Part shown: piece after piece, positions 1-35,467 of the stretch
Numbering within the stretch: the first letter of the stretch is position 1
Layout of the letters: every line of letters begins with the position of its first letter
Source of the DNA: Oopsacas minuta
Lineage: Eukaryota; Animalia; Porifera
Length of the DNA stretch: 64,000 nt
Reading direction: 5' to 3'
Assembly (NCBI GenBank): GCA_024704765.1
Contig: JAKMXF010000222.1
Span: 1,492,400-1,556,399 of the forward strand
Notes under the pieces: generated by a model
Databases searched by the model: none
Seen by the model: only the letters and a program-made list of their open reading frames with translations
What the model was told of the DNA's origin: nothing
Program-made: the position numbers and the translations under genes

Positions 1-1164
1 TTACGTTATGTAAACACCACTAATATGTGAAATGGTTAAACGGGCTATTCAACTATATTAATGTCTGGTGTATGGTGGAACTATCAGTTAGAATTTAAAT
101 CCAAAGTTACCCTTAAGTCTACTAGTCGAATCCTAAATAATGCATCATATATTCGACTCATCTAACCATAACGTAACTTCAAGCATAAATACCTTGTTAG
201 CGCAGGAGGTGCCCAAATGGCATGGACGATGTAGTACGTTCGTCCGTACTCGCGACCATTTTTCTATGGTAAAATGGTCTTAGGATCAAATTCTATGAAA
301 ATTTTGGTATATTTTGGTCCCATGTAACTCAGGGATTTTTCTTGGATTAGTGTCCAAGCTTCTAGATGTTGTCTGGATGTAGACTACCTCCTGATTGTTT
401 GATTGGGTGTTTTAGAGCTTGGTCTGGTTGTTGAAATGGATTTTTTCTCTAATTAGTCTGTTATCAGGCTTTTTGATACTGATACACCTCTTGTTTTAGT
501 ACCCCTGGACCAATTTTTCAGGTGACCAAGATTTTCGTGACAAGACTATCAACCCGACGGGACATGTTCAAACAGCTCCGAATAATGTCAGCAAGTATTT
601 TCTACCTCTGACTTAAGTTTAGTCAATATGCTCAGAAAGATAAAATTTTCTTGCACTTGTAGTTGTGAGTTCCCAGATGATGAGACTATTGGACCACTCA
701 AGTGGCTATTCATAAAACTTTTGGCTGATTTAGTGTATATTACTCGAGGTATTCCTAATTGCTAAGCGTGAATTACATATCGTAACGTTATTTGATTAAT
801 GTATTATTTAATCAATACGTTTCTGACTATCACACATGTAATCACAGATTTGTAGGGAATTTCAAAGGTCTTACGTGGTTTAGCTCCTACAGCATAGTAT
901 ATAATATATTTAATGTTGATAAATGTATTTGTTTTCATTTCAATTGCTGGTAGGACAAATATTCTTTAATTGACCTTCAAATAGTGGAATTCTTCTGAAT
1001 CACGTCTCAGATTGATCTTATTCAAGTCAAATTCAAAAACGAAGATGATGCACAAATAAATATTGGATATAACTCAGATGATGAAATAGATAATGGCTCA
1101 GATAGACTGATAGGAAGTTCTTTTAGTTCCTCTATGGAAGAATTAGATAAAGGAGATTGATCAG

Positions 1165-1480
1165 TTGCAATATTATGAAGGGAAATGTGGTATCTCTAAG
1201 TGTATACCAAATTGGTTGCAGTCATTCAACAATCCTAAAATGTTTCTATTTTCTTTGAGTTGCTTTCTCTGTCTCCAAGGAGCAATAGCTACTGGATTTA
1301 TCTCAGTAGCACTCTCTAGTATCGAAAGACGCTACAACCTAACCAGTGCACTATCAGCAATGGCAGCAGCATCGTATGAAGTGGGCGTGATACTGTTCAT
1401 TCTATTCACCAGCTATTTGGGAGGAAGGAGTCATAAGCCAAGAGTCCTGGGAATATCCTCTTTAGTGATGGGGACAGGCT
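1165..1480 (+). pseudogene. SLCO/OATP organic anion transporter 5' fragment, truncated by foldback insertion
   Basis: Translation has OATP N-terminal motifs (LQSFNNPKMFL, SSIERRYNL, SYEVG, SYLGGRSHKPRVLG). An upstream acidic frame ends in TGA just before 1165 in another frame. Similarity stops at ...VMGTG, where the inverted repeat starts at 1481. Confidence 0.8.
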
Positions 1481-2147
1481 TGTTGCGTGAGATTTTAACT
1501 CATCTATATTAAACGACTGCTGTCAATTTGCAGGATATTCGACCAGGATCATTTCAATCACTAATTTGTCCTACTTGTACTCATTAGATTACCCGAAATT
1601 AATATCATTCGGTAGAGGAGTGTTGAACGTCTTATAAAATATAATTTTCTTAAATATTTCTAACTTTTACCTATATATTTTTGTCATGACGAGTAGGGTC
1701 GCTTATCTATTAAAAAAGACGACCTGAAAGTGAGAATACAAATCTGAAATTTTGTGTCTATATTTGTGACCCATGGACGTTTATGTAAATTAAATTTCAT
1801 CCAAAAATTCCTAAAACTCGAGGAGATACAAGTATTCAAATTTGAAGTCAGAGTTATATTGGAGGGGGTGAGTATCATTTTACAAAAAGTAGGGTCAGTT
1901 CAAATTGATATTTGATATCCCAAATCGAACTCAAACTATTATATTTTGATAACAATCGATAGCTGAGACATGGATGTATACCATTATGTTACTATAATCA
2001 TGAAATTCTGAAAGATACAGTCACAATGGGGTTCTAAAAATGGCATAATTGTCGTCTTTTATGTATTTTCGAAATTTCAATTTAGACTCAAATTTCAAAA
2101 GTAATTTTTCCCAGAATCGCCTGAAACTTCACAAGCTCCTTCTTTTA

Positions 2148-6420: not shown

Positions 6421-6811
6421 AATCTCTCTATCCCCTTGCTTATATAATATTATTAATAATTGTTGTTCATTTCCCAATTATAGTGATTAGTCTGTTTATA
6501 CATTTACTGGACAAAAATAGGCAATTAGCAATCCTTTCACCAGGTATCAAAGGTGGACTATTATGATTTTATATCATTCCCGTAGCTATCGCTTCAAAAG
6601 GGTAAATTTTTATTTTTCAAAAAAGGATATTTTATGAATAATCACTTTCGGATTTTCGTAAATCCTGCTCGACCCCGATTAAGGAATGTAAATTTGTACA
6701 TTCCCATTAAGTGACTTTTCAATAACTTCTGTTATTATTTACACCTTGTAAGGATAACATAATCCTTATGGTATAGATAATGTTATTTACTTAATTAATC
6801 TATACTAGCTA

Positions 6812-8359
6812 ATGCTAATTGTAGAGCCTGTTGCTTACCCTACTGTTAGAACACTCAGCTCCCTATGCTTATTTGTTATCAAGGATCTTCTCATTTCATA
6901 CGTACACTCGCTACCCGCTTCTAACAAGTCCACTCTCCCGGATGCTCTTTTCGTTATCTCTCCCTTTGATCCTCTCCCCTCCCAATGTGTGCAGGAGCTC
7001 ATAAACCTCCTGGCTGAGAAGAAACAGCTCGATATAACATTGCTATCTGTCCTTATTCACACACATCTAACATCTATAGATCTATCTCCCCTAATACAAA
7101 ATGCTAAGCAACTGATCAAACCTAAGCTGTTTCAATTGATAACTTCAAGGTAGATTCGTTTCTTTCAATATATCCAAAATTTGTCTTACATGTATCTATC
7201 TTACTGTAGGTGTACAGAGCTGCTACACCTGACACTAGGAATGTCTTGTAATATGATGGGAGGGAAGCTTGTATTGAATACACTCATTTCTAATAATAAA
7301 GTCCTCAGAACTTTAATTGTATCAAACTTCAGACCAATTGATGAAGTCATCTCGCGAATCAGTATAATGCGATATCTTACAACTCTTGATTTGAGTAACT
7401 CTCAGCTGTCTGATGACGGGGTAACACTACTGACGTCACAAGAACCCCCTCTCCCTGATCTGACCTCTCTTAATGTCTCTAACACCCAGATTACATCATA
7501 CGGGATGCAGCTAATCTTCTCAAATTTCATTTCCCTCCTGGATTTAAATCTGTCACAATTAGACCTTACAGTCCCTTTCGTTAATTTAAAACCTCACCGT
7601 CTCACTTCTCTCACACTACTCAATACAGATATTCTCCCAGACAACCTATATTCATTGCTACTAGCTGTATTGCAGGTGCAGCACCTGGAGCTATATCCTT
7701 ATCATAACTCATTCATAGATAGAGACTGGTTGTGGGATGTTTTAGCTGCTCTACCCGATATAACATACTTCTCAACATACAGATCTTCCCTTAAATTAGC
7801 AAATAGTTTTACTAAAAGATTAGAATATCTCTCTCTACCATGTACTCTATCTCGTATCAGCGCTCCTCTCATGTGTACTCTCTTCCCTTCTCTACAACAT
7901 CTTAATCTAGATGACTGTAAGATTACTGATGGAGCTAATTCTCCTGGTATTGCATGGAATACAACAGAGCTGATAAGCCTTAGTCTAGCTGGGGCTACGT
8001 TCTCTCAGACAGACCACACTAGCTCAGCTGAACAAGAGATGCTTACATTTATCGGATCATTCGGTAACCTGGAGAAGTTAGATATTAGTCGCACAGATAT
8101 TTTCACATTTATTCTAATGGACTTGTTAAGACGGACCAGCGTATTTAAACTAACTCACCTCACTCTACATTCCTGCGATAAGTTGAATAAAGATATAATA
8201 AAGTTCCTAACAGAGCTAGCTTATACCTGTACACATCAATGCTGTGTAGATCTCAGTTATTGTTTTAATGTCAAGAAGAGTGATTTAGAGCTATTCAGAG
8301 ACTCTCTTAAGCAAGCTATACCTCCTGTACAACACGGTCTCTCCGTTAAATGGCTATGA
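6812..8359 (+). CDS. Leucine-rich-repeat protein with N-terminal BC-box/VHL-box-like motif (putative CRL2 substrate receptor), 495 aa
   Basis: Exons 6812-7149 and 7210-8359 joined in frame by a 60-bp GT-AG intron. LRR units LxxLDLSNSQLSD, LTSLNVSNTQITSYG, LQHLNLDDCKITD, LEKLDISRTDI. N-terminal TLSSLCLFVI...LPSQCVQELINLL. Confidence 0.85.
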
Positions 8360-8530
8360 CTGATACTAATTACCTGTTACATGATAATTTACAGGATACA
8401 CAGCTCTATGTCTATCATTGTTATCTCTGTATGCTCTATTCTCTAATTTAATAAAGCGAGATATTTTACTGAGATTACTAGTGATTGAGAATTTCTGCTT
8501 GATAATGTTATCTGTCAGGTTTATGACGTA

Positions 8531-9532
8531 ATGAGTTCTGGTTGGAAGTCTATAGTCTGTAAGCAGACGGATCTTTATCTAGAAGCTGTTCTACAATGCG
8601 GACAAGCATTTGGTTGGAGGAAAAACGAGGAAGGAACTTGGTTCGGGGTTCTTAAGGATCATGTATTTCTCTTGAAACAATCAGAGTCATCTCTCCTCTA
8701 TAAGACACTCCCATCTACTCAGATATACTCAGACTCAGAAGAAGTATTGTTGGATTATTTTAGACTGAGAGAGGATATGAGTAGTTGTTATGAACAGTGG
8801 AGTGAGAGAGATGAGAGGTTCAGAGATACACACCAGATAATTACTGGTATACGTATACTACGTCAGGATCCTGTAGAGTGTATATTCTCGTTTATCTGTT
8901 CCTCTGCTAACAACACACTGAGAATATCTCAACTTGTGTTGAAACTCGCTCAGCACTTTGGCAAGGAGATTGCTCTATTTGAAGATGTTCCTTGTCATTC
9001 TTTCCCGCGGATAGAGGATCTGTCTAGGAAGGGGGTGAGAGAGAAACTTGTGTCTCTAGGATTCGGATACAGGTCTCGCTACATATACGAGACAGCTATC
9101 AAACTGAGGGACGAATATTCACGTGACTGGTTGGTTTCTCTACGAGAAATCCCATATAAAGATGCAGTAGAATCTTTATTGCAATTCCCGGGCATTGGGA
9201 GGAAGGTAGCAGATTGTGTATGTCTCATGTCCCTTGATAAATTAGAAGCTGTTCCCATGGATACACACGCTATCCAGATTGCTAACAGAGATTATGGACT
9301 AAAGTTGAATAGCAAAAGTATTAGTAAGACTGACCACCAAAAAGCTGGAAATTATTTCAGAGATTTATACGGAGATAGAGCTGGTTGGGCACAAACTATA
9401 CTTTTCGTGAGAGAGCTCAAAGTTGTCAATAAGTTGTATCAAGATGTATCATCATCTGCTAGCAAGACTAAACGACGGAGATATAAGCAAGATAACACTA
9501 GTAGTGATGAGAAGAAAGTGAAGCTTGCATAG
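8531..9532 (+). CDS. OGG1: 8-oxoguanine DNA glycosylase
   Basis: LQCGQAFGW, RILRQDPVECIFSFICSSANN, LGFGYRSRY, HhH-GPD LLQFPGIGRKVADCVCLMSLDKLEAVPMDTH, AGWAQTILF. Intronless, 333 aa. Confidence 0.96.
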   Translation: MSSGWKSIVCKQTDLYLEAVLQCGQAFGWRKNEEGTWFGVLKDHVFLLKQSESSLLYKTLPSTQIYSDSEEVLLDYFRLREDMSSCYEQWSERDERFRDTHQIITGIRILRQDPVECIFSFICSSANNTLRISQLVLKLAQHFGKEIALFEDVPCHSFPRIEDLSRKGVREKLVSLGFGYRSRYIYETAIKLRDEYSRDWLVSLREIPYKDAVESLLQFPGIGRKVADCVCLMSLDKLEAVPMDTHAIQIANRDYGLKLNSKSISKTDHQKAGNYFRDLYGDRAGWAQTILFVRELKVVNKLYQDVSSSASKTKRRRYKQDNTSSDEKKVKLA

Positions 9533-9643
9533 AAGTGTTAATTTATTACATTTTAACATGTTCGAAATATAATTCAATAAATAAATTTAGTATTATTTTT
9601 TCTCTTCCGAATAAACTATTTCAAATTTACTATTCTAGAATTA

Positions 9644-12600
9644 ATGACTCAAGCATTGAATACTCAAAAGTCTGACACATTTGACAGAAAATGGTCTGAC
9701 ATAGTCCGGACCATCAGTAGTGTGATTAGGCTTGAGGGAGTAGATCGCAAGAAATGGAATGACAGTTTTTCTGACGTGTACGCATTGTGTATGCCTTATC
9801 CTGTCTCTTATGCTGATACTCTCAATAATTACCTTGAAAAGTTCTTTGAACAGCATGTCTTAAATATCAAATATGAACTGGATAGTTGTCATAGAATGTG
9901 AGATTATTTAATATGAGTATGGTATTCCATTATTGGAAGATTTGATATTTTCTATCTACTTTTAGACATTTACTAAACCAGTACAGTACTCAATGGAACA
10001 TGTTCAATGACGGTGTACGCTACCTGAACAGTCTATTCAGTGCTTTGAATAGCAGAAATGCTAAGAAAGGAATGTTTGACAGCAGACAAGCTAACCGTCT
10101 CCTCCTATCTCTATACGGACTCCTAGGAGATGAGAGCAAGCTAGAGGTTAGTAGCATGGCACTCAAATGCTGGAAAGAAAAACTGATAATCCCACTTAAT
10201 GAGAGATTAACAGAGGCTGTAATATTTGAGATGCAAAATGACCGTCAGGAGGTCACATACAGGACACAAATACACGTGAGTACGGCAAGCATAGTTGTAG
10301 ATTGATAATTCTGTCAGTATTGATATTACGTTATCGTAGGATCTGGTTAAATCGTACATAGAGGTGGAGGCTTGGCAAGTAATGGGACAGCTGTTCTACT
10401 ACACTCACAACCTGGAGGAATCTCTTCTGCGAGCAGAGCGGGATAATTACCGTAACGAAGCTGCAGCTAGGATATCAGACTCCAGCTCTACTATAGGAGA
10501 TTACATACAATGGGCACATAGACAACTCAAAACAGCTAGAGATTTCGGCAGACAGTATCTGCATGCTGGTACTCAGATAAAACTATGTAGAGAGATTGAG
10601 GATAGATTACTAGTTGATTATCTGGATAGACTTAAGGATGAAGCAGTACATCTTATTAACAAACAGGATTTTGAACAGCTCTCTGTCATGTACCGTCTAT
10701 TTAAAGATGTTCCAGAGGGATTGAGTGGGATCAGTGATCATTTACAGACGTTTGTTAATATTGTTGTTATTGTATTTACAGTACCCCCTTGGGAAACAAC
10801 AATTAGTACGCACTAACCGAGTTCTACTGTACTTTTGATTATACTGTATTGTTTAGTTACTACACAGAGCAAGGTATGAATGTTATACACAAACTTAAAA
10901 CTTCCAAGAACTACCAGGATTATATAACTAACTTTCTACGTATACACACTCGCTACCTAGAAATAACAACCGAATATTTCTCAGCTGATTCATACTCTAA
11001 GGAAGCTATGGATCATTCTCTAGAGAAGATCGTAAACTCTCCAGAATTCACCTGTGATGGAGCTAAAGCTGCTGAGATCCTGGCTAAGCAGTGTGACGCT
11101 ATTCTAAGGAAAGGATCTAAGATTGTATCAGAAGCAGAGGTGGATGAGCGTCTTACCCAGCTGGTAACTATATTCAGCTATGTAGATGGTAAAGATATAT
11201 TCCTTAGATTCTACTCACGCAATCTAGCTAACCGTCTCATTAACAGTACATACATATCTCAGGTAATATCATATTGAATGGACACAATTTGGGTGACGTC
11301 ATTATTAATGCGGTTTTAGGATTCTGAAGAGAATATGATACAGAAACTTAAAGCTTGTTGTGGGTATAGTTATACAAATAAACTTCAGAGGATGTTACAA
11401 GATATTCGTATTAGCGAAGATTTGAGAATTAAATTCCAATTAAAAGCTGGAGAGAAAAATATTCTTAAGGTTTGTCAGTTTATTAATTTCATAATATTGT
11501 CTTATTGACTGAATAGTAGGCCCCTTCCCTCGTGTAGTATCCAATTGTCAATAAGATGAGCTATATGGTAGATATGAGAATTTGATTTAATTTACGCATA
11601 GAAGCACGTTAGAGGATCGAGTAGTTGTAAAATTTCCAACCTTATTTATCCGTGGACCCCTCTGATATACTTCTATACAAACTATGCCTGTGTATATTTG
11701 TCTGTGGACCATCAAGGGGTCCATCGACCACAGGTTGTGAACCGCTGATTTATCGCATGTTATGCTTTGATTCCGTGTATGTAGAATGTGATTTTTGTTC
11801 TTCCCTCACCCAAGAGTGCAAAATTAACAAAAACGCACCAGCTACTACCGAGATAATATGTTATTCGTCATATATTTCATTTAATATAAAGCTATGAATA
11901 TAATTATTGTTATTTATTGAGTTCCTATGGAAGCTAAATATTGATTACGGAAAATAACTGATATTTTGGAGTATTTGTATATGTGCTACTTATTAGGTGT
12001 TGGTACTACAAAGTGGATCTTGGCCCATTCAGAGACGGACTGCGCCCTCATTCCAGCTACCAGAAGACCTAACTCCACTCTTGATGGGATTTGAGAATTT
12101 CTATCACTCACAGTTTTCAGGTAGAACTCTCCAATGGCTACACTATAGAAGTACTATGGAGGTATCCATGACTTATCTTAAGAATGTGCATGTAGTAGTT
12201 GCCACTACATACCAAGCCTCCATCCTGTTGCTATTCAACAAACAAGATAAAGTAACGCTAGAGGATATCATGCAATTATACTGTCTACCTGAAGAAGACG
12301 TTACCCGTACCCTAGCCTCGTTAGTAGAATCTAAAATATTACAGGAAGAATCTCAGCTAGGAGGCACTGAGTATTTATTAAATATGAACTACAGTAACAA
12401 ACATTTTAAATTCAAGATAGCCAGTACTATGTTGAAGGATACAGCCTCTGATAGAAACAATGTACACCATTCAATCAATGAAGACAGGAAGATATTCTTA
12501 CAGGCAGCGATAGTACGCATAATGAAAGCTAGAAAGGCACAGACACACAACCAATTAATCAGTGAAGTAGTAGAGCAGTCTAAGAGTCGTTTCCAGCCAA

Positions 12601-12698
12601 ATATTTCAATAATAAAGAAGTGTATAGAGTTGTTAATGGAGAAGCAGTACTTGGTGAGAGCTGAAGAAGATAAGACACTATACAGATACTGCGCTTAG
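9644..12698 (+). CDS. CUL2: Cullin-2, 6 exons, 743 aa
   Basis: Exons 9644-9897, 9966-10275, 10340-10749, 10857-11262, 11320-11469 and 11997-12698 join in frame at GT-AG sites (2232 nt). CUL2-type N-terminus WNDSFSDVYALC, cullin core KDIFLRFYSRNLANRL, and C-terminus DRKIFLQAAIVRIMKARK...IKKCIELLMEKQY. Confidence 0.95.
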
Positions 12699-33294: not shown

Positions 33295-34410
33295 ATGCAA
33301 GAGGATATATCCTGTTTGGAGAATGTCTGGGTATGGCGAGATGATACAGAATGTTTGGTATGTGCTCCTAAACAGGATGCAGATCTCCTCCGAGAATTCT
33401 GGTCCGGTCAGTCTAAGCCAACTAGATCATTACGTTCTAATCACTACGATAGAAATCTATTCAGATCAATCAATAACTTTCATAAACTCCAGGATAGATT
33501 AATACAGAACCATCCTCTAACTCTATTCACAGATTTTACAGCTAACAGACAGGTGCAGACGATTGGTTTATATAAGATAAAGCAAATTACACTTAATTAT
33601 ATCGCAGATAAGCATTTAGACAAGATGTTAATTGGAGCTGTCATCAAGTTTGACACATGTCTAAGTCTCTGTTGCTTCGACAAATTGCTGCTATGCTGTA
33701 TCCGATACTTCCATGACTTCCAATGCATACGTCAGTATGATGACGTAGGAGATAATGCTTACAAATATCTTGACAGTTCTTCTAAGGATTGGGAAGAGAA
33801 GGTCTTAGCTGCAAAAGCTGGTTTATCCTGTATGAGGAGTACAATAGCTCGCGTATACTCCTCTCTTATACTATGTATGGGTCTAGATGAGAGTCTACAC
33901 CATAGTAGCTATGGCAAGCGAAAGACTTCTAAATCTCAAATAGATAATCAGTTCTATGAAGCTATGTATGATTATTTATTGTTTGGGGTTTGGATTACAT
34001 TTAGCCGGCTACATTGGGAACAGATCAAGTCCAGTATTGGTACTCTATTCAAAGCTCCATTTACTATTTGTCTAGACAAGACACCTACCCCGATAGATTT
34101 TAAGCATTCAGTTTCTGTTGATTTCGCTCGTATTGGGAGAGATTCTAAAGGTTTAATTATTAGTGCATCTAAGCATAAACACACCAGATCTAAAGTTATG
34201 CAGGTAATTCTTCCAGAAGTGTCATCCATGAGTCCAATCCCTGACCAAATGGAGGACGAGTTAAGCTTAGAAGAACTAATCCAACTCACAGAAAATGTTG
34301 GTATTATCGGCTCTAACCTAGCTCTGTTCGATCCTCTCACTCTAGAGCCATTACCTGAGAGGTTAAGACTTAGCTCTACCTCATTTTCTCGAAGCAACAC
34401 TAACTCTTAA
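33295..34410 (+). CDS. PPP1R36: Protein phosphatase 1 regulatory subunit 36-like
   Basis: VYSSLILCMG...HHSSYGKRKTSKSQIDNQFYE..Y.YLLFGVWITF.R.HWEQIKSSIGTLFK resembles the PPP1R36 conserved block (YCSLILGLG..HHMCCGK...D..FFE...AWIVFRR....IEEEVGRLFR) as recalled. Confidence 0.75.
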   Translation: MQEDISCLENVWVWRDDTECLVCAPKQDADLLREFWSGQSKPTRSLRSNHYDRNLFRSINNFHKLQDRLIQNHPLTLFTDFTANRQVQTIGLYKIKQITLNYIADKHLDKMLIGAVIKFDTCLSLCCFDKLLLCCIRYFHDFQCIRQYDDVGDNAYKYLDSSSKDWEEKVLAAKAGLSCMRSTIARVYSSLILCMGLDESLHHSSYGKRKTSKSQIDNQFYEAMYDYLLFGVWITFSRLHWEQIKSSIGTLFKAPFTICLDKTPTPIDFKHSVSVDFARIGRDSKGLIISASKHKHTRSKVMQVILPEVSSMSPIPDQMEDELSLEELIQLTENVGIIGSNLALFDPLTLEPLPERLRLSSTSFSRSNTNS

Positions 34411-34537
34411 CCATTTAAAAATTAAATATACGTATAATACCCAAACACTTACCTGTATTTATTATTTAATAAAAGCATTAATTACTGTTGTATATTTGTT
34501 TAGCGCTAATAATATATATCTTTTCATATGCTAGATA

Positions 34538-35467
34538 ATGGGTTGTGACGGTGGTACTATCCCCAAGAGATCAGAGATGATAAAAACGAAGAAGAAAGCA
34601 ATGCGAGATAAGAAACAAGATGAGCTAATAGCTCGCTGGTTCTACTGTGCTCTATCAAATCACGAGTTAAGACGTCCTGTCATGGGATGTGAGTTAGGAC
34701 GTCTCTACAATAAGGAGGAGCTCCTCACTGCTCTACTGGACAAACCTAACAAGCCTGAGAGCATAGAACATATCCGTGGACTGAAAGACTTACGTGAATT
34801 AAAATTAACTCCTAATAAAAGTTTTAATCGTAAGGCACTAGAGAAGGCTGAAGGATATATTGATTACCAAAATTCTGAGTTTATGTGTCCTGTACTTGGT
34901 GTTGAGATGAATGGGCATTATAGTTTCGTGTTCCTGTGGTCCTGTGGGTGTGTGTTCTCAGAGAGAGCTCTCAAAGAGCTGAAGACTAACAACTGTCTTG
35001 TATGTGGACAGGCTCGTAAAGAGAATGACGTCATTAATTTGTATCCAGAAGGTAATGATGCTGATTTGATGCGGAGTAACTTATTGAATAGGAGGGCAGT
35101 AGGTAAGGTATCAAGTAGGAAGAGAGAACTAGAATATGAATCCCATAAGGAAGAGGTTATTCCTGAAGAAGCAGTTAAAGTTATTTCTAAAGTATCCTCC
35201 GTAGATGTTGATAGTTATGAGAAGAAACCAAAATTAGAAGCAAAGAGAAAGAATCATAAATCACATACAAGCAAAAAAATTTCTAAATCTAACTCCACAG
35301 CAAACTCTATCTTAGTTAAAGATGTTGCATCTAGTGTCAGTAAATATGGTAAGGTATCTGATAATCCTCATGCTTCAGAGGTTTATAAATCTCTCTTCAC
35401 ATCAAGTCAGAAGGAACCTCCTGCTCTACAGAGTCCCTGGGTTACATACAATCCTTATAGATTGTAA
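34538..35467 (+). CDS. RTF2: Replication termination factor 2
   Basis: MGCDGGTIPKR, CELGRLYNKE, HIRGLKD, CPVLGVEMNG, CGCVFSERALKE, C-terminal VYKSLFTS. Confidence 0.96.
   Translation: MGCDGGTIPKRSEMIKTKKKAMRDKKQDELIARWFYCALSNHELRRPVMGCELGRLYNKEELLTALLDKPNKPESIEHIRGLKDLRELKLTPNKSFNRKALEKAEGYIDYQNSEFMCPVLGVEMNGHYSFVFLWSCGCVFSERALKELKTNNCLVCGQARKENDVINLYPEGNDADLMRSNLLNRRAVGKVSSRKRELEYESHKEEVIPEEAVKVISKVSSVDVDSYEKKPKLEAKRKNHKSHTSKKISKSNSTANSILVKDVASSVSKYGKVSDNPHASEVYKSLFTSSQKEPPALQSPWVTYNPYRL

Follow-up and report, generated by a model that had tools for sequence, protein, structure and literature searches.

The window analysed here is a 64-kb stretch of the genome of the glass sponge Oopsacas minuta (contig JAKMXF010000222.1, positions 1,492,400-1,556,399) and carries three tandem genes on its forward strand, encoding a leucine-rich repeat (LRR) protein, the 8-oxoguanine DNA glycosylase OGG1 and Cullin-2 (CUL2). 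The best single reading of this trio is that it is transcribed polycistronically, which is plausible yet unproven and to which we assign a probability of about 45%. The secure results are modest: a family of spliced-leader (SL) RNA genes in O. minuta, one proven SL acceptor, upstream of the LRR gene, and the recognition that a spacing of about 60 nt between poly(A) signal and acceptor is a local feature. The assembly used comprises 61.46 Mb in 365 contigs. The published description of this genome (365 scaffolds, 36% G+C, ca. 61 Mb, mean intergenic distance of 2 kb) mentions neither trans-splicing nor operons.

The tandem, same-strand arrangement is apparent from the sequence of the window and its open reading frames (ORFs). 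Exon structures of LRR and CUL2 were established with RNA contigs assembled from a k=31 graph of run X4, which derives from the same sample as the genome; that X4 is RNA is attested by contigs that skip five GT..AG introns, a sixth being supported by matching loose ends. The LRR gene (6812-8359) consists of exon 1 (6812-7149) and exon 2 (7210-8359), separated by an intron (7150-7209) seen as a GT..AG joint in X4, and encodes 495 aa with a stop codon at 8357-8359. Its product is identical to the NCBI record 'F-box/LRR-repeat protein 13 [Oopsacas minuta]' (P0121) and has a weak Pfam match to LRR_Zer-1 (E = 1.5e-7). OGG1 (8531-9532, stop codon at 9530-9532) is a single exon of 333 aa with OGG_N (E = 2.7e-30) and HhH-GPD domains; it shares 40-48% identity with animal homologues and 70-77% with five glass-sponge orthologues. 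The Cullin-2 gene (9644-12698) has six exons (9644-9897, 9966-10275, 10340-10749, 10857-11262, 11320-11469, and 11997-12698); four of its introns are GT..AG joints in X4 contigs, and the last is the one supported by loose ends. Cullin and Cullin_Nedd8 domains were found by Pfam, and PDB searches with separate exons gave Cullin-2 as the best match for both the first exon (E = 1e-13 versus 4e-4 for Cullin-5) and the last exon (E = 2e-61 versus 5e-42 for Cullin-1). With Cullin-2 the top match by many orders of magnitude at both ends, the third gene is recognisable as a clear Cullin-2.

Trans-splicing was observed at the first gene of the trio. An X4 RNA contig matches the window from position 6807 on, and the letters preceding the match point, AAAAAACTTAC, occur nowhere in the window; in nine SL RNA genes, they form the 3' end of the SL exon. 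RNA depth falls to 0 at 6776-6791, upstream of this junction. The LRR mRNA is thus SL trans-spliced at the AG 6807-6808, 3 nt before the ATG at 6812. The loose end carrying the leader is 11 letters long and stops exactly where the SL gene copies begin to differ, which suggests that several leader variants are used. Contig ends, rather than reads, also suggest a second SL acceptor at TAG 6822-6824, located 16 nt beyond the first. Here RNA contig 12 begins at 6823 and the contig carrying the leader extends to about 6852, as expected of a k=31 fork; the break is seen in RNA only, the DNA contigs from this sample being continuous. If this second site is used, the annotated ATG at 6812 would be removed from roughly half of the LRR transcripts.

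The source of the leader could be traced in the genome. The 15-mer AAAAAACTTACAGGT, composed of the joined string, AG and a GT donor, occurs nine times in the assembly against two for the reversed control, and each of the nine copies sits in a conserved small gene. A DNA search extended these to 20 related places, 19 of which have a common architecture, indicating at least 19 genes: an upstream block CAGATATAAGTA, a leader exon of about 45 nt with CAG at its end, the donor GTAAGTTGG, and then hairpins. In one of these hairpins, 90% of the cells pair and two pairs are compensatory. No Rfam family, SL or other, matches these genes. They are dispersed (loci L036-L055, on contigs C10, C16, C19, C41, C133, C166, C312, C313, and C348) and have at least eight distinct exon 3' ends, all terminating in CAG. 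By this architecture, the family is recognisable as the SL RNA genes of O. minuta, with a leader 3' end ...AAAAAACUUACAG, and the leader itself would be about 42-47 nt long. A separate occurrence of a leader 3' end, AAAAAACTTACAG, lies within ordinary sequence and is followed by no GT donor (G000:C5:144686-144728); it may represent the retrocopy of a trans-spliced mRNA.

The two gaps of the trio share a simple anatomy. Gap 1, between LRR and OGG1 (8360-8530, 171 nt), contains the LRR 3' untranslated region (UTR), an AATAAA at 8450-8455 and, 63 nt further on, a CAG (8516-8518) that leaves a 12-nt leader before the ATG at 8531. Gap 2, between OGG1 and CUL2 (9533-9643, 111 nt), has an AATAAA at 9576-9581 followed after 57 nt by a TAG (9636-9638), 5 nt before the ATG at 9644. 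For OGG1, RNA contig 15 of X4 spans 8146-8545 without break or mismatch and ends at 8545, that is 8515+30, where DNA contigs of the same sample again run through. Where a leader reading ...TTA|CAG and the genome reading ...TGT|CAG converge, a k=31 path has to terminate at this very position; the break, although a contig end and not a set of reads, is indirect evidence for a leader fork at CAG 8516-8518. A protein search for RNA contigs of the OGG1 5' end returned no candidates.

Comparison with five other glass-sponge assemblies revealed that the order LRR-OGG1-CUL2 on one strand is kept in all five, as is a YAG located 0-17 nt before the start codons of both OGG1 and CUL2; a YAG also precedes the LRR start codon in the two relatives that were checked. 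At OGG1 and CUL2, the YAG is thus preserved in six species while the rest of each gap diverges. Gap lengths vary widely: gaps 1 and 2 measure 113 and 820 nt in L010, 421 and 191 nt in L013, 93 and 119 nt in L012, 68 and 504 nt in L015, and about 1,915 and 197 nt in L011. In L015, the gap 1 acceptor lies only 62 nt after the LRR stop codon. The 421-nt gap 1 of L013 is of the 113-nt type with an insert of ca. 300 nt resembling a miniature inverted-repeat transposable element (MITE), and the long gap 1 of L011 holds an integrase fragment on the opposite strand. Smaller changes were found in a near relative (run X5), with insertions of 3 and 9 nt in gap 2. From these comparisons, tight packing with gaps of about 70-200 nt is ancestral, insertions of kilobase size being tolerated.

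If the trio is transcribed polycistronically, transcription would start upstream of LRR and run on through both gaps. Each gap comprises only the short 3' UTR of the upstream gene and, some tens of nucleotides on, an acceptor; the acceptors of the trio lie 3-12 nt before the next ATG and would receive the glass-sponge SL from the dispersed family of at least 19 SL RNA genes. Cleavage at the 3' end of one message together with SL trans-splicing of the next, a step that we infer, would resolve this small operon. In support of a common transcript, gap 1 is bridged: RNA is continuous from the end of the LRR coding sequence through the AATAAA into OGG1, at the level of contigs and not of single molecules. 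The small size of the gaps, the gene order and acceptors kept in the five relatives, and the probable partnership of the LRR protein and Cullin-2 in one E3 ligase point the same way. Of the SL-trans-spliced polycistronic pre-mRNA put forward in the initial annotation, the trans-splicing part is upheld by the SL RNA genes, the LRR joint, the break at 8545 and the conserved YAG; the polycistronic part stays at the level of plausibility, RNA being continuous over gap 1 only.

Several observations weigh against a polycistronic transcript. A long LRR 3' UTR would explain the continuity over gap 1 equally well, as would an OGG1 outron with its start within LRR. Gap 2 is unbridged, with RNA contig depth at 0 at 9573 and 9614, and the use of the AATAAA at 9576 thus has no RNA support; such a coverage hole alone proves nothing. 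No leader letters were seen at OGG1 or CUL2 in the X4 RNA contigs. Relatives with intact genes carry insertions of 0.3-1.8 kb in either gap (421, 504, 820, and about 1,915 nt), and this tolerance is at least as compatible with independent promoters. Additional initiation is hinted at by word depth in the RNA, a poor measure, which climbs downstream from about 600 to 1,300 and 2,500. Synteny among glass sponges continues downstream to ILRUN, ASMase, and BUD31, well past the trio, and the conservation of this longer order weakens the use of trio synteny as a sign of operon constraint.

These observations find their most serious alternative explanation in three independent units, in which a promoter lies within the 3' part of the preceding gene and SL trans-splicing removes the outron produced, yielding mature mRNAs identical to those of an operon. 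Such embedded promoters are nearly as likely as an operon, and the RNA contigs cannot separate the two. In addition to OGG1 and CUL2 standing intact behind transposon-like insertions, to the lack of RNA contigs in gap 2 and to the gene-by-gene rise in depth, independent initiation is favoured by the occurrence of SL acceptors at genes with long upstream gaps, LRR itself lying about 3.9 kb after the nearest same-strand ORF of at least 110 aa. The distribution of gap sizes was examined in a 264-kb sample consisting of the window and twenty 10-kb samples of the genome. The sizes of tandem gaps grade continuously from about 110 nt up to several kb with no separate operon peak, which speaks for independent units and against an operon. 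Adjacent pairs of long ORFs (at least 120 aa) in this sample were tandem in 61 cases, divergent in 11 and convergent in nine, a rough count that mixes exons and genes. Against embedded promoters, 10 of the 11 divergent pairs lie at least 639 nt apart (the exception, at 20 nt, is possibly an artefact), suggesting that promoters need more room than the gaps of the trio provide. The 68-nt gap of L015 leaves no promoter space, no promoter element was found, and the RNA over gap 1 is continuous.

Whether one transcript or three, all three genes are likely to be trans-spliced, as observed for LRR, indirectly indicated for OGG1 and, for CUL2, judged from the conserved anatomy. It is improbable that OGG1 and CUL2 escape trans-splicing, with transcription starting inside the gaps, very short unspliced 5' UTRs and YAGs that are incidental. 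An AG in the 10 nt preceding an ATG is indeed common by chance: it was found at 68% of long-ORF starts and at 55% of all ATGs, a modest enrichment (p = 0.03), and the absence of SL reads seen for the two genes would be explained at once. However, a YAG is kept at both genes in all six species within otherwise diverged gaps, a leader fork would account for the RNA-only break at 8545, and trans-splicing is demonstrated for LRR, the first gene of the cluster. Cis-splicing of 5' UTR exons from further upstream to these AGs, the refuting case named in the initial annotation, has nothing specific in its favour and is very unlikely, as the letters joined at 6807 are absent from the window and present in SL RNA genes, no cis joint into 8519 or 9639 occurs among the X4 RNA joints, and such an exon would have to sit inside the upstream gene.

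The initial annotation described the same-strand genes with their gaps of 171 and 111 bp, gave distances of 63 and 57 nt from AATAAA to YAG and of 12 and 5 nt from YAG to ATG, and noted a third such gap with a spacing of 61 nt; this description was accurate, and Pfam and PDB searches agreed with the names given to LRR, OGG1, CUL2, PPP1R36, and RTF2. The third gap (34411-34537, 127 nt) separates PPP1R36 (33295-34410; PPPI_inhib, E = 8e-10) from RTF2 (34538-35467; Rtf2, E = 1e-73) on the forward strand, with an AATAAA at 34468-34473, a TAG at 34532-34534 and the ATG at 34538. The genome-wide peak near 60 nt that the initial annotation proposed as a check was not found. Gap 2 contains two further AATAAA, at 9580-9585 and 9610-9615, which had gone unmentioned; as three are present, its spacing could equally be 53 or 23 nt. 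Within the window, the composite pattern is enriched, with 18 occurrences compared with 6.1 +/- 2.7 in shuffled sequence. Genome-wide, a spacer of 52-60 nt occurs 5,355 times, against 5,131 in the reversed control and 5,299 with a spacer of 22-30 nt, and the histogram of distances in the 264-kb sample is flat. In other tight tandem gaps (174, 183, and 201 nt), the AATAAA is missing or 105 nt off. The gap 1 sequences of the relatives mostly lack both AATAAA and ATTAAA; an A/T-rich hexamer of conserved position is found 25-63 nt ahead of the acceptor. A spacing of about 60 nt was therefore rejected as a rule by the additional signals in gap 2, the other tight gaps, the flat counts and the relatives; the three similar spacings are real yet local, and the spacing is neither conserved nor a genome-wide peak. 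The 57-63 nt may be regarded as what would be left by 3'-end and acceptor modules placed back to back. Many 3' flanks in the window and in the sampled loci L016-L035 contain neither AATAAA nor ATTAAA, and the poly(A) signal of O. minuta seems loosely defined.

The short OGG1 leader has features of its own. Its 12 nt include a two-codon upstream ORF (uORF), ATGACGTAA, at 8523-8531, which overlaps the main ATG and had previously been missed. Of all gap 1, only the stretch (G)TTTATGACG just before the ATG (8519-8533) is shared by the window with L010 and L013; in these three, the ATG is preceded by CAG, an optional G and TTTATGACG. This leader forms a uORF of two to three codons overlapping the main ATG and also resembles TGACGT, the half-site of the cAMP response element (CRE). 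As a CRE-type promoter element, TGACGT was rejected, since it is not enriched at gene starts (143 matches in 264 kb, five of them within 80 nt of 84 starts). The overlapping uORF offers a simpler reading of the conserved stretch.

Two of the three genes may be related in function. Residues 14-23 of the LRR protein (TLSSLCLFVI, nt 6851-6880) form a BC-box motif conserved in four glass-sponge species, fitting the BC-box consensus, (S/T/P)LxxxCxxx(A/I/L/V). The O. minuta Elongin C (L057:1405-1743:-) was found with PF03931, and its complex with the LRR protein was modelled with ESMFold2. The model scored 0.78 against 0.21 for the best of three controls; in the calibration of the score, 51 of 78 solved complexes and two of 108 mismatched pairs attained the mark. 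At least 84% of contacts agreed between runs, the partner had a pLDDT (predicted local distance difference test) of at least 63, and contacts centred on L15 and C19. Binding of Elongin C by the LRR BC box is thus supported by the model, which may also reflect memory of solved BC-box complexes. A motif match further identified a Cul2-box-like LPSQCVQEL at residues 55-63 (nt 6974-7000), with L55, P56, S57, C59, V60, and Q61 invariant; it fits the Cul2-box consensus, hydrophobic-P-x-x-hydrophobic-x-x-x-hydrophobic, and the LPxP Cul5 box is absent from the protein. The LRR protein is probably a Cullin-2 substrate receptor, encoded two genes upstream of CUL2. No homologues outside glass sponges were detectable by sequence search, a fold search returned only generic LRR horseshoes, the N-terminus being of low confidence, and a PDB sequence search with exon 2 gave only weak generic LRR matches. 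Based on this restricted distribution and generic fold, it is plausible that the protein is a lineage-specific substrate receptor of glass sponges. The LRR and CUL2 genes lie in the same cluster in six glass-sponge genomes, and their products are probably partners in one E3 ligase.

Other elements were observed in and around the trio. Contigs from elsewhere, both DNA and RNA, match short parts of CUL2 introns 3 and 5 (10805-10832 and 11636-11752), indicating that these introns hold repeated DNA; intron 3 is also partially retained in RNA (depth 96.6 at 10783). Upstream of LRR (window 1150-1518 and 2310-2873), only a 123-aa fragment of an OATP transporter is left in O. minuta, whereas the relatives have the whole gene immediately upstream of LRR; the fragment is followed by an ORF resembling a helix-turn-helix (HTH) transposase, so that the upstream boundary of the trio has been rearranged in this species. 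Elsewhere in the genome, a palindromic MITE-like repeat (CCGTTATATCGAAG...CTTCGATATAACGG), with 196 genome copies of CGCGATAATTACTT, occurs in several tandem gaps 130-200 nt upstream of start codons (L019, L022, L025, L027, and L028; e.g., L028:3885-4040). Its presence in two tandem gaps of 330-344 nt raised the question of a promoter module, and this candidate was dismissed on account of its palindromic structure, its ca. 196 copies and its MITE-like character.

In animals, SL trans-splicing has a scattered distribution, and its tie to operons is central to ideas on its evolution. A proven operon in glass sponges would bring an early-branching phylum into the group of animals with operons and help to explain the packing of co-oriented genes in a 61-Mb sponge genome. 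The trio is a good test case, given its gaps of 111-171 nt, one of them bridged by RNA, and two genes probably encoding partners of one ubiquitin ligase. Tentatively, and with the odds still somewhat against it, it could be the first documented sponge operon, in which three genes form a conserved unit that SL trans-splicing resolves and that would co-express Cullin-2, a lineage-specific BC-box LRR receptor, and OGG1, possibly within a wider polycistronic transcription of long co-oriented runs.

Among the closest known systems is that of the hexactinellids themselves, where SL trans-splicing is said to have been first reported by Douris et al. in 2010. According to Wenzel et al. (2021), no operons have been reported in hexactinellids, and none was found in the papers searched. 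In Aphrocallistes vastus, the leader is ca. 37 nt long and exists in many variants (Francis et al. 2023, PMC10282587); as in O. minuta, mRNA 5' ends carry a short leader, derived from a small RNA, in several versions, with the difference that the O. minuta SL RNA genes and LRR acceptor are known here from sequence only. For the LRR protein, the closest parallel is provided by the ZYG11/ZER1-type receptors of the Cullin-2 RING ligase (CRL2), which combine an N-terminal VHL box with LRRs. The BC box, the weak LRR_Zer-1 match and the modelled Elongin C interface are shared features, whereas the sponge protein has no armadillo (ARM) repeats and no detectable sequence homologue outside glass sponges, and bears the NCBI name F-box/LRR protein 13.

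With the SL2 operons of Caenorhabditis elegans, the trio shares co-oriented genes, gaps of about 100-170 nt in which a poly(A) signal is followed by a trans-splice acceptor, and the grouping of unrelated as well as related genes. In contrast to C. elegans, O. minuta has no known specialised downstream leader, and its spacing varies among relatives (25-63 nt) and shows no peak across the genome. The nematode model invoked by the initial annotation, with a U-rich spacer and about 100 nt between poly(A) site and acceptor, found no specific support, and no Ur element was identified. Tunicate operons, as described in Ciona and Oikopleura, use a single SL and have almost no intercistronic region. 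They differ from the sponge trio in that the sponge gaps keep a recognisable 3' UTR and have received kilobase-sized insertions in some lineages, the sponge operon being a candidate drawn from sequence and contigs. As in tunicates, one leader class would serve all genes, gaps can be very short (68-113 nt in relatives), the genome is compact, and 3'-end formation and acceptor would nearly abut within each gap.

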